From NCBI RefSeq assembly GCF_001194135.2, contig NC_068991.1, positions 2,547,782 through 2,611,781 of the forward strand: 64,000 bases of DNA. Direction: 5' to 3'. This document shows, piece by piece, positions 57,315-60,576 of the stretch. Both the position numbers and the translations under genes were made by a program. Within the stretch, counting starts at the first letter, position 1; each line of letters starts with the position of its first letter. This stretch comes from Octopus bimaculoides. Its lineage: Eukaryota. Under the pieces are notes generated by a model. It worked only from the letters and a program-made list of their open reading frames with translations, made no database searches and was not told the origin of the DNA.

Positions 57315-59349
57315 TGGGTGGGGACAGATAGACAGACAAATAGGCAGACAGGTAGCTAAATAGACAGACAGACAGACAGATAGACAGATATATAGATAAA
57401 TAGACAGACAGACAGATAGATAGATATATAGATAAATAGACAGACAGGCAGGCAGACAGACAGACAGACAGATAGAGAGATAGATGGATGGATGGATGGA
57501 TGGATGGATGGATGGAGGGATAGACAAACAAACATGCACACATTTCCCCGTACAATTTACTGGTCATTTCTGTTATGATCATTTGAAATCAGAAATGAAT
57601 AAATAAATAAACAAATCAGAGTTAATTATCAGAATCAAATATTGGAAACATTGGAAGAAATTATGGATCTGGAATTGTTATTTTTGAGTTGGAGCCAAAA
57701 AAAAAAAAAAAAAAAAAAACCTCAAGAATGAAAAACAAAACTTCAACATTAAACTTGTTAGCCAGACATATGGTTGTGTTTCCAATAGTACAACTTTGAA
57801 AGAAACTCTCCTGCCAAGATATACAGACACATCATCATCATCATCAACATCATTTGATATCTGTTTTGCATGCTGGCATGGGTTGGATGGTTTCACAGGA
57901 TTTGGCAAACTATAGGGCTGTGTTGAGCTCCAGTGTCATTTCTGGCATGCTTCCTACACCTGGATGCCTTCCCTATCGTCGACCACTTTACACTGCATAC
58001 CAGGTGTTTTTTACATAGCACCAGCACTAATGAGGTCACCATGTAATTTGCAAAACAGAAAAGGAACATACGTATTAAACCACACACACACACACACATG
58101 TGCATACTCACATATGGTAATAAATGGAAACTGATTTATGCATGTATATATGTTTTGAGTATTTAAAATGATTTCATTTAATGGCTCTGAGGGAGCAAGA
58201 GGATGTTGCACAAAAACTCCATCCTGAACGTATTGCTTCTGATAGCAGAAACAGCTACAAGCCAATGAAGCTGATTGTGTGATTCTTGTTCTTTTGTCAT
58301 TTATTAATAAATATTACACTTTGCATTTGCTGAATACTTTACTCTAAAAGCTTAGACATATCAAATGAATATAAAAATATGTAATAAATTTTTTTTTTTT
58401 TTCGTGAAGGTGTATGGCCCAGTGGTTAGAATGTCAGGCTCACAATCATGAGGTAGTGAGTTTGGTTCCTGGATGGGGCTGTGTGTTGTGTTCTTGAGCA
58501 AGACTTTTTATTTCACATTGTTCCACTTCATTCAGATGTAGAAATGAGTTGCAACATCACTGGTGCCAAGCTGTATCGGCCCCTTTGCTTTTCCCTTGGA
58601 CAACATCAGTGGTGTGGAAAGTGGAAGACTAGTATGCATAGGCAACTGCTGGTCTTCCATAAATAACCTTGCCCAGACTTGTGCTTCAGAGGGTAACTTT
58701 CTAGGTGCAATCCCATGATCCTTCATGACCAAAGGGGGTCTTTTAATTAACATTTTAAAAAAATATGTGTATATAAATATCTATTATAATATTTAGTGTG
58801 TGCAATGTAAATACTTATCCCCTGGGGGGACGCACACAACTCAGCACAGTCCAACACATCACACCCTACCACATACCTGAAACTCACCAGATCCAGCCTG
58901 GAATCCATTGCAGTTATCAGGATTAAACATGTGACCCAGCATCACAGCCACAGCATCTTTAGCAGAAGAAAACTGAAATACAGACAGAATTGTAGAAGGA
59001 ATAACAAGTAAAGAAAGAAAAAAAGATCTCAAGAATACAATTGCAATTTGCTAGAATGTTACCAACAGCATCAAGAAATCTGACCATTCAAAAGTTCATG
59101 TGGAACCAGATCTAACAACAATTTCATCTTAAGTGCACATTTTCAAGGCAAGACTATTACTATATATTGATAGCAAAGAGCCTTCTTGGATCTTCAGCTT
59201 TGGAAGTAGTCAGGGAGGAAGGGATACACATAAAACAAAAGAGAAGGATACAGTTCTATATTCAAGAGATGAGGAATTATGTACGTTATTTACATTATTT
59301 ACATTTGACGGATATTTGTCCTCATCTTGTTTGTTGTTGTTGTTATTAC

Positions 59350-59393
<44 letters not shown>

Positions 59394-59779
59394 CCCATGG
59401 GCATATGGCATAGTGGTTAAGAGAGCGGGGCTACTAACCCCAAGATTCCGAGTTCGATTCCAGGCAGTGACCTGAATGATAATAATAATAACAACAACAA
59501 CATCGAAAAATAACTTAGGAATGAGAACCCAGGTTCGAAATTTCCCCAAGACACCTGATGAAGGCTGGAGGGTATATCAGCCGAAACGTTGTGTTAACAA
59601 CAAACAAGATGAGGACAAATATCCGTCAAATGTAAATAATGTAAAAGAGAAGGATTCTAGGAATACAAGAATATGCCTAAGGCAAAACCAAAATAAGATG
59701 TCTTACCTTTAGTCTTTTCACACCTGCTTCTCCATGAAGACCTGGGTTAGAAAGATTAGTGGTTGGGGTTACAAGATTG

Positions 59780-59836
<57 letters not shown>

Positions 59837-60576
59837 GTGGTTTTATGTTGCCTCCTTTCAGGTATTTCTTACAGAAAGACCATCTTGTCGGCTGGATACA
59901 GGATAGGTACACAGGTACACCCCACCCCACTCTCTTTAACCAACTCAAGGAAGAAACAAGTCACTGACAATGGGTACCTCTACCATATTTCTGCAGAATG
60001 GTTCCTCTCATTTTGGCAGCTCGCATATGCAACAACAACAACAGCAATAATGACAATAACGATAGGAAAAAGACAGGTAACACAGGTTGTTACTTACCCA
60101 GACCAAGTTCCATTTCACCTGTCTCCAAAGAGAAGAGAGGGCCAACCCCTGGAACGGTACAACCACTGAGACTAAGGCCAATGGTACCTGCGAATAAGAC
60201 AGAATAGCAAAACAGTGAAAGGTCAATGGTAGTGAGAGAGACAGTGATGGTGATGGTGATGATGATGGGGTTGGTGGTGGTGAGGGGAGGTAGGGTGGAG
60301 CAGTGTCTCTGATAGTGAAGACAAAGTGATGATAGTGTCAGGGTGTAAAATGGATTAGTTGGTGGTAGTGTAGCTGTTGACATGATGTAGTAGTAGTAGC
60401 AGTAGTAGTAGTAGTAGTGTTGGTGGTGATAGTAGTAGTAATGGTGGTGGTGGTAGTGATGGTAGTAGCCAGTACTCACAGATGCACTTGAGTACATCCC
60501 GACAGACAGTCGTAATCTCAGCCAGACTCCTGCCTTCTTCTGCCATGGCACCAGCAATCTGTGGAATTGTTCAGAT

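Follow-up and report, generated by a model that had tools for sequence, protein, structure and literature searches.

Which enzyme copies a short, tRNA-headed retroposon whose 3′ part carries a hammerhead ribozyme motif of the kind known from Penelope-like elements (PLEs), and what could such a ribozyme do in it? The question is raised by an insertion in the genome of Octopus bimaculoides, located in a stretch of 64,000 nt that was analysed as a whole (the window: NC_068991.1, assembly GCF_001194135.2, positions 2,547,782-2,611,781, forward strand; all coordinates below are those of the window unless a locus is named). We describe the anatomy of this insertion, its membership in a family, an inverted architecture that recurs among the family members, and the conservation of the ribozyme core and helices. 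We consider it reasonably likely that the insertion is a young tRNA-derived short interspersed element (SINE), presumably transcribed by RNA polymerase III (Pol III), which bears a PLE-type hammerhead in its 3′ module and was copied by a PLE-type enzyme.

A sequence-only reading of the window had taken the insert as one tRNA-headed SINE with a Penelope-type hammerhead. The features it listed, namely a target site duplication (TSD), A and B boxes, an anticodon-like arm, a microsatellite spacer, a second B-box-like motif and the hammerhead, were all recovered in place (Table 1), and the TSD, the boxes and the details of the motif bear out a retroposed tRNA-headed element with a minimal hammerhead of the PLE type. 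The TSD of 13 bp brackets 393 bp (59250-59642) and is the sole non-microsatellite 13-mer direct repeat with a spacing of 150-1000 bp within 58700-60200. The A box (TGGCATAGTGG, 59406-59416) agrees with TRGCNNAGTGG at 11 of 11 positions and the B box (AGTTCGATTCC, 59451-59461) with its consensus at 10 of 11, with one mismatch. The starts of the two boxes are separated by 45 nt, a tRNA-like spacing, and an anticodon-like arm (GGGG-CTACTAA-CCCC) is found at 59427-59441. The 5′ end of this copy lies 12 nt before the A box, at the position expected for a Pol III start. As judged from its sequence, the head appears to be derived from a tRNA, yet it is degenerate and weakly tRNA-like. The second B-box-like motif (GGTTCGAAAT, 59532-59541) has two mismatches to the consensus and lies in a body segment (59502-59549) that is translated as MRTQVRN in many open reading frames (ORFs) of the family.

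While the bounds of the insert held, it is not a single copy. A perfect 50-nt inverted repeat (59289-59338/59596-59645) is present within it, so the insert is more than one SINE copy: a full-length copy in forward orientation (59394-59642) follows a partial, inverted one of 144 bp (59250-59393), which the earlier reading had overlooked, and the 50-nt arm is common to both. When the left part is read on the minus strand and aligned to the right part, the order is CCTGAAT-(AAT)n-(AAC)n, the 50-nt arm and then a tail of about 40 nt, which ends in …TAACGTACATAATTCCTCATCTCTTGAATATAGAACTGT and adjoins the left TSD. The two copies are joined head to head at 59393/59394. The inverted copy contains a (TTA)15.7 tract (59343-59389) and is devoid of the 94-nt segment with body and hammerhead (59502-59595 of the forward copy), a segment that in the forward copy has an (AAC)n tract on either side. 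The letters AAA (59643-59645) at the right junction belong to both arm and TSD. BLAST of the element parts against the window revealed no second copy elsewhere in it, and a repeat scan of the window no unit-length tandem. The insertion is young, as had been suspected from its intact CpGs: the observed/expected ratio of CpG is 0.72-0.86 in the element but 0.13 in its flanks, taken over 2.2 kb and 1.1 kb, and both the arms (50/50) and the TSD (13/13) are identical.

The ribozyme motif (59550-59595) reads GACAC-CUGAUGA-A-GGCUGG-AGGGUAUA-UCAGCC-GAAA-CG-UU-GUGUU. The boxes CUGANGA and GAAA follow each other in type I order; they are separated by helix II, and helix I closes the structure. Folded on its own, the motif forms these two helices. 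We then used a descriptor of the minimal hammerhead that demands the core boxes, helices I and II of ≥4 bp each, a paired 15.2-16.2, U16.1 and H17 and permits one extra base. With both strands of the window scanned, this descriptor matched at this site alone, and it did not match at all in 300 second-order Markov simulations of 59 kb each. The Rfam hammerhead models, which had been proposed as a check, gave no match in the window, neither at the gathering score nor with the cut-off relaxed to E ≤10. Such a negative was to be anticipated, since these models expect a helix III and the motif is devoid of one. A permissive window-wide Rfam scan was swamped by miRNA false positives due to microsatellites (mir-297, mir-466, mir-3149). 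Fold energies of the motif, of the module and of the 3′ stem described below were not significantly better than those of shuffled sequences (z -0.9 to -1.9; -1.1 to -1.6 for the 3′ stem alone).

Family members were sought at the protein level, with the translated element as query. Two O. bimaculoides proteins matched its forward copy in frame 0: A0A0L8FV75 (P0001), which reads from the hammerhead through the arm into the tail, and dystrobrevin beta isoform X1 (P0002), whose N-terminus goes back to a sense copy; the splice donor lies in AAATGTAAAT. A multi-frame query added NUP42 (A0A0L8FR24, P0003). Its C-terminus stems from an antisense copy that supplies a splice acceptor and covers, in the order seen in the window, the CUGAUGA box, the body, the spacer and the head. 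According to these sequences, at least two O. bimaculoides gene models (P0002, P0003) have acquired exons from family copies. A translation profile compared to 1.84 billion representative proteins matched 121 ORF clusters, which fall into four groups: type A (octopus-like) and types B, C and D. Type B reads QTPEEGRRTYRPKRCGNNNKDEDNSPK…QKFRQ, often in 43-residue tandem repeats. The candidate family postulated from the single locus is thus multi-copy, as judged from the three proteins, the 121 ORF clusters and the fetched loci.

The DNA of eight other loci shows the same architecture as the window element, and dispersed copies with the whole of it comprise P0001-3, L011, L016, L018 and L020. The same head was found in P0002, P0003 and L011. 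After the 3′ arm, the tail follows in the forward copies P0001, L009, L020, L021 and L022; the tail is therefore the true 3′ end of the family. Type A contigs from Logan share further repeats with the window at about 82-84% identity, which argues for an octopod-like genome as their source. Types B and D were found in the same assembly (ERZ21867824). A metagenome scan for GGCTGGAGGGTATATCAG gave 8 chance matches, none with hammerhead context, and a search by an exon peptide of the host gene, aimed at orthologous loci and an empty site, gave no candidates.

A 9-bp stem (AGAUGAGGA/UCCUCAUCU) with an AU-rich loop can form between arm and tail (59607-59615 in the forward copy, 59267-59275/59319-59327 in the inverted copy), and type B has a counterpart, GAUGAAG/CUUCAUC, with one compensatory change. 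This predicted stem of 7-9 bp is possibly a recognition structure for the reverse transcriptase (RT).

In 49 kb of fetched loci, the descriptor relaxed to helix I of ≥3 bp matched exactly twice, both times at the homologous position. The match in L022 (type C) reads UAC/CUGAUGA/A/GGCCGU-8 nt-ACGGCC/GAAA/CGUU/GUA, that in L023 (type B) CAC/CUGAAGA/A/GGCCGG-8 nt-UCGGCC/GAAA/CGUU/GUG. Upstream of the hammerhead both have a tRNA-like head (TGGAGCAGTGG … GGTTCAATCCC in L022, TGGCGTAACGG … GGTTCGATTCT in L023). L022 (560-880, Logan ERR1711875) and L023 (1873-2215 and 1024-1352, ENA ERZ21867824) thus hold complete relatives with head, intact minimal hammerhead, arm and tail, and the design is common to diverged subfamilies from at least three sequence sources. 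In an alignment of 12 copies, 82.6% of the cells of helices I and II and the 3′ stem are paired, as compared to 31-50% with the partners shifted by 1-3 columns. For pair 10.4-11.4, six of the 12 copies have U-A, five C-G and one U-G, and it is unpaired in none; in the 3′ stem, one pair occurs as G-C six times and as A-U twice. The covariation in stems I and II that had been suggested as a check thus showed up as pairing, while the number of independent events is small and CpG decay may contribute. Since, in addition, the structure was derived from a member of the alignment, covariation gives moderate support to the conservation of the ribozyme core and helices across the relatives. A codon-level tally (W/R, Q/R) for helix II adds little weight because CpG decay can explain it.

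An inverted copy directly adjoins the 5′ side of the forward copy in 5 of the 6 loci that are informative, the window included (the window, L011/L014, L009/L010, L016/L017 and L021, but not L020; the other contigs begin inside the element). Its extent is given in Table 1. The length differs at each locus, which argues for an inverted part that is made anew at each insertion rather than belonging to the transposing unit. In L016, as in the window, the tail is on the inverted copy alone, and the flanking repeat (ATAAATAGT) has 9 bp instead of the 13 bp of the window TSD. Furthermore, 14 of 122 ORFs run from an antisense copy into a sense copy, never in the reversed order, and L023 has an inverted copy of 92% identity about 520 bp upstream. 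PLE insertions have been described to carry an inverted, 5′-truncated copy beside their 5′ end and a tail of 30-40 bp that is often one-ended; they are biased toward microsatellites and have TSDs of variable and fairly great length (Craig et al. 2021, PMC8557442). The window insertion displays these hallmarks, with an inverted copy on its 5′ side, a tail of 40 nt at one end, a long TSD and an association with microsatellites. Recent PLE activity is on record for Octopus, O. vulgaris having 31 families (PMC13282606). This insertion signature strengthens, in an indirect manner, the earlier idea of spreading by the Penelope enzyme and points to mobilisation by a Penelope-like RT.

We infer the following course of events, from transcription by Pol III and the PLE enzyme to the order of priming and the role of the ribozyme. 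Pol III would transcribe the unit from the tRNA-like head, and a PLE-type enzyme with RT and GIY-YIG endonuclease would open a staggered break 13 bp wide. Both DNA ends would then prime cDNA synthesis on the 3′ end of the SINE RNA. One of them would prime at the true 3′ end, yielding the inverted partial copy with tail, and the other internally via AAA microhomology, yielding the full-length forward copy without tail; the two cDNAs would be joined head to head at 59393/59394. The loss of the hammerhead segment from the inverted copy would be accounted for best by a template jump from one (AAC)n tract to the other. That this loss was due to run-off at an end produced by self-cleavage was considered and rejected, the switch point lying 5 nt past the predicted cut and GTGTT being absent. 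As helix III is missing, the hammerhead is predicted to be inactive as a monomer, which would keep the Pol III head joined to the 3′ recognition end. It would be kept in active lineages as part of a PLE-like 3′ module, where its role could be recognition, the pairing of two RNAs or the processing of tandem arrays.

Several points weigh against this reading. The head is below the tRNA thresholds, with an Rfam tRNA score of 14.7 bits (gathering score 29); ARAGORN recovers nothing at default and, with the threshold lowered to 90%, a degenerate "Ser(act)" cloverleaf. A PLE with the same 3′ arm, tail or hammerhead did not turn up, no search dedicated to it having been made, and neither the window nor the fetched loci contain a PLE ORF. 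The sole RT near a relative (L019) belongs to an AP-endonuclease LINE, with a 694-residue ORF 4.8 kb upstream. The inverted copy without hammerhead segment needs an extra step such as the template jump between (AAC)n tracts. The conservation of the ribozyme relies on three intact copies and consensus translations; the hammerheads of most other copies are decayed, as expected of dead insertions. The covariation amounts to very few independent events in a structure derived from one of the aligned sequences, and the U-A/C-G alternation in helix II could be due to CpG decay alone. All in all, the insertion is a real, young ribozyme-SINE that was probably mobilised by a PLE.

The first alternative is an ordinary LINE-dependent SINE, in which the hammerhead module is merely a "highly conserved domain" and the inverted piece arose by twin priming or template switching of the LINE machinery. 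In classical twin priming, known from L1 inversions, an upstream segment of the RNA is inverted and the same 3′ terminus is not duplicated at both ends. In the window, by contrast, both ends begin from the 3′ arm; the inverted copy in 5 of 6 loci, its variable extent and the one-sided 40-nt tail are what has been described for PLEs, and the ribozyme is specifically of the PLE minimal type. Nevertheless, mollusc SINE superfamilies with conserved central domains and unassigned partners are common (PMC4758252, PMC4824008), LINEs dominate the recent activity in octopus (PMC13282606), a LINE lies near one of the relatives (L019), and no PLE partner turned up in the window or the fetched loci. We regard dependence on a LINE as unlikely, though it deserves to be weighed before the others.

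A second alternative concerns the ribozyme itself. It had been suggested that self-cleavage sets the RNA end of the SINE, and a related possibility is that it makes a circular, unit-length RNA before reverse transcription, as in retrozymes. The core of the window motif is intact, and animal retrozymes do operate via self-cleavage and circular RNA (PMC7229834). In the type B relatives, moreover, neighbouring hammerheads in head-to-tail arrays could act as dimers and release units: L019 (10065-10520; ENA ERZ21867824, ctg122172l) comprises three units of 129 nt with partly decayed minimal hammerheads, preceded by an inverted copy. The window copy, however, is a single unit without tandem, and its insert extends 52 nt beyond the predicted cut (about 95 nt in the tail-bearing copies, i.e. 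the inverted copy, L009 and P0001). Since the Pol III head is upstream of the cut, a cleaved RNA would be left without head or without the 3′ end from which priming starts, and end-setting by self-cleavage is thus unsupported. Furthermore, minimal hammerheads were inactive in vitro as monomers and only slightly active as dimers (PMC4209133). Judged by its sequence, the hammerhead would not define the RNA end of the window SINE, and a catalytic use in the SINE cycle is improbable. As cleavage would be self-defeating for the element, the conservation of the motif argues for a role beyond end-trimming. It is conceivable, if doubtful, that the palindromic ACGU pairs two template RNAs by a dimeric helix III and that the selected role is this pairing rather than excision; pairing of templates would then lead to frequent two-copy deposits, inverted or tandem, of the PLE type.

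A foldback DNA transposon or MITE with 50-bp terminal inverted repeats and tRNA-like and hammerhead-like content by chance could account for the perfect 50-nt inverted repeat and the flanking direct repeat. A TSD of 13 bp is unusual among the cut-and-paste superfamilies. Against a MITE, the left arm is not terminal but separated from the TSD by the tail of 39-40 nt, the inverted part varies from locus to locus (0 in L020, about 80, about 85, 144 and ≥210 bp), and the whole element is present in the forward copies alone, so that this explanation is very improbable. Practically negligible is the view that there is no biological feature at all, the hammerhead being a chance match or the inverted repeat an artefact of short-read assembly: the window is a draft assembly with 5,020 N in 16 gaps, many of them beside (AC)n, (AT)n and (AG)n microsatellites, PLE-like structures are known to mislead short-read assemblies (PMC8557442) and Rfam has no hammerhead match, yet the simulations gave 0/300 descriptor matches, the motif is at the homologous position in L022 and L023, and the inverted arrangement recurs in independent assemblies of several runs (L009/L010, L011/L014, L016/L017).

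The insertion lies in an intron of a triokinase-like gene (Dak1/Dak2) on the minus strand, whose splice donor (59706/59707, -) is 51 nt upstream of it; relative to this gene the forward copy has antisense orientation. A perfect 50-bp inverted repeat with arms 257 nt apart is thereby placed in the triokinase-like pre-mRNA; it is possible that it forms a long double-stranded RNA with an influence on editing or splicing. Other repeats were also seen in the window. Two copies of a different tRNA-derived SINE family (around 24940-25010 and 42400-42590, both minus strand; A box …CAGTGGTTAAG / …TTAGTG, B box GTTTCGATTCC) are each directly preceded by a microsatellite, (AT)n/(AC)n and (TTA)10. A fragment of a non-LTR (LINE) reverse transcriptase (10600-10815, minus strand; …GVPRGPALGPLLFIVYINDL…) gave a weak RVT_1 match. 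Sub-threshold matches to eukaryotic LSU rRNA (46481-46653 and 46670-46788, minus strand; 39.5 and 45 bits, gathering score 50) are found beside or overlapping an ORF with a Mos1-type HTH_48 domain (46729-46971, minus strand; Pfam E = 2.8e-7), and the region 46481-46971 appears to be a mariner-like remnant next to rRNA-like sequence. An ORF of 265 residues, rich in His, Gln and Arg and without Pfam match (20159-20956, plus strand), may be an exon or a low-complexity read-through.

Table 1 Features of the insertion and of its hammerhead motif in the window, and extent of the inverted copy at other loci
Feature	Position or locus	Strand	Remarks
Left TSD, AAAAGAGAAGGAT	59237-59249	.	identical 13-mer at 59643-59655
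3′ tail of the family, about 40 nt, on the inverted copy only	59250-59288	-	unique in the window
3′ arm, inverted copy	59289-59338	-	perfect 50-nt inverted repeat with 59596-59645
Remaining inverted partial copy, (TTG)n(TTA)n...TTCAGG	59339-59393	-	mirrors the forward spacer CCTGAAT(AAT)n(AAC)n
Putative tRNA-derived head, forward copy	59394-59474	+	A box, anticodon-like arm, B box
(AAT)n(AAC)n microsatellite spacer	59475-59501	+	length differs among copies (P0003, L011, L018)
Body 5′ of the ribozyme	59502-59549	+	small hairpin GAACC-CA-GGTTC and B-box-like GGTTCGAAAT
Minimal type I hammerhead	59550-59595	+	descriptor match; fold of isolated motif
Helix I	59550-54/59591-95	+	window motif
CUGAUGA box	59555-61	+	window motif
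Extra unpaired A between A9 and G10.1	59562	+	also in L022 and L023
Helix II	59563-68/59577-82	+	G10.1-C11.1 = G59563-C59582; this pair also in L022 and L023
GAAA box	59583-86	+	window motif
Palindrome A-CG-U replacing helix III	59586-89	+	GAAA-CG-UU (59583-59590) identical in L022 and L023
Predicted cleavage site	between 59590 and 59591	+	after U59590
3′ arm, forward copy	59596-59642	+	tail-less end; last AAA overlaps TSD (59643-59645)
Right TSD	59643-59655	.	identical to 59237-59249
Inverted copy	L011/L014		≥210 bp, head included
Inverted copy	L009/L010		about 85 bp, decayed hammerhead included
Inverted copy	L016/L017		about 80 bp, arm and tail only
Inverted copy	L021		present; module without head
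Inverted copy	L020		absent

The function of the hammerhead in PLEs has been called unclear (Craig et al. 2021, PMC8557442), and little activity has been found for it (Cervera & de la Pena 2014, PMC4209133). Here, an element of 250-290 nt of the Pol III type keeps the same ribozyme intact in three diverged subfamilies. It is small enough for mutation and testing and therefore offers a compact system for this question. If the PLE-dependent reading is true, there is a class of SINEs that parasitise PLEs instead of LINEs, and it would account for part of the large "unclassified SINE" fraction in octopus genomes, which are rich in unclassified SINEs (PMC13282606). If the pairing of RNAs by the palindrome is true, it would be the first molecular function for a "highly conserved domain" of a SINE and give a 250-nt handle on the puzzle of the PLE ribozyme.

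The closest known case is that of the schistosome SINE-like retroposons Sm-alpha and Sj-alpha, which are described with a Pol III promoter and a canonical hammerhead (Ferbeyre et al. 1998 and Laha et al. 2000, as summarised in PMC6765202 and PMC8490949). Like these, the octopus element is a short, non-autonomous, multi-copy and dispersed retroposon with Pol III-type promoter and type I hammerhead. In contrast, the Sm-alpha hammerhead is canonical, active in vitro and frees units from multimeric transcripts, while the octopus motif is minimal, of the PLE type and without helix III, so that it is not a canonical type I hammerhead with helix III. Moreover, the octopus element has the promoter upstream of the ribozyme in a single unit, an inverted partial copy and a cephalopod host, a comparison made by description only. 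The combination of tRNA head and hammerhead, which the earlier reading did not know as a described cephalopod family, is therefore less without precedent than it had seemed, given the Pol III SINE-like elements of schistosomes. Among the papers searched, none connects a hammerhead with a SINE domain or with a cephalopod SINE of any kind, and k-mers of the element had no match in them.

The minimal hammerheads of PLEs are characterised by a missing loop 3, a short helix I (3-5 bp) and a long helix II (PMC4209133). Traits that the published search did not impose are an extra nucleotide after A9, the pair G10.1-C11.1, a palindromic 15.2-16.2, a helix I of 4-5 bp and a long helix II (Cervera & de la Pena 2014, PMC4209133). 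The window motif has every one of these PLE traits, including, in place of helix III, the palindromic ACGU at 15.1-16.1, which would allow a dimeric helix III, and a helix II of 6 bp. Thousands of solo minimal hammerheads are known from metazoan genomes, also as opposite-strand pairs 100-700 bp apart (PMC4209133), and have been read as truncated PLEs; the octopus motif, in contrast, is part of a tRNA-headed unit that retroposes as a whole and, unlike PLEs, has no PLE ORF or pLTR attached. Likewise, the insertion architecture of PLEs was described on autonomous elements of 3-4 kb (PMC8557442) and is found here on a SINE of 250-290 bp.

Animal non-LTR retrozymes are tandem units of 170-400 bp with circular RNAs and mostly canonical hammerheads (Cervera & de la Pena 2020, PMC7229834), and the case has been made that they are non-autonomous PLEs (PMC7229834; Li et al. 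2026, bioRxiv 10.64898/2026.07.22.740005). The octopus element resembles them in being non-autonomous, hammerhead-bearing, AT-rich and proposed to depend on PLEs. Unlike retrozymes, which are tandem and have no Pol III head, the window copy is one unit with tRNA-like head; the type B relatives do form retrozyme-like head-to-tail arrays (L019), with a unit of merely 129 nt. The last 175 nt or so of the element correspond to slightly more than one unit of a minimal-hammerhead repeat such as PLEs carry, the unit consisting of hammerhead, AAC-rich linker, 50-nt arm and 40-nt tail. Indeed, the type A sequence just 5′ of the hammerhead (TTCGAAATTTCCCCAAG) resembles the tail of the preceding unit in the arrays (CAGAAATTTAGACAAC). 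According to this, the 3′ part of the SINE is slightly over one unit, which links it to the animal retrozymes.

A tRNA head combined with a module conserved across families and hosts is also the hallmark of SINE superfamilies such as CORE, V, Deu/Nin-DC, Ceph, Meta and MESC (PMC4824008, PMC4758252). Types A-D behave like such a superfamily, with the difference, taken from the descriptions of the others, that the conserved module of the octopus element is 3′-terminal and folds as a hammerhead. Already known are thus the combination of Pol III promoter and hammerhead in schistosomes and the PLE minimal hammerheads as solo motifs. What we rate as new, on the sequences compared, is a superfamily of tRNA-headed SINEs in which a minimal hammerhead of the PLE type forms the conserved 3′ module, with insertions that have the look of PLE products.

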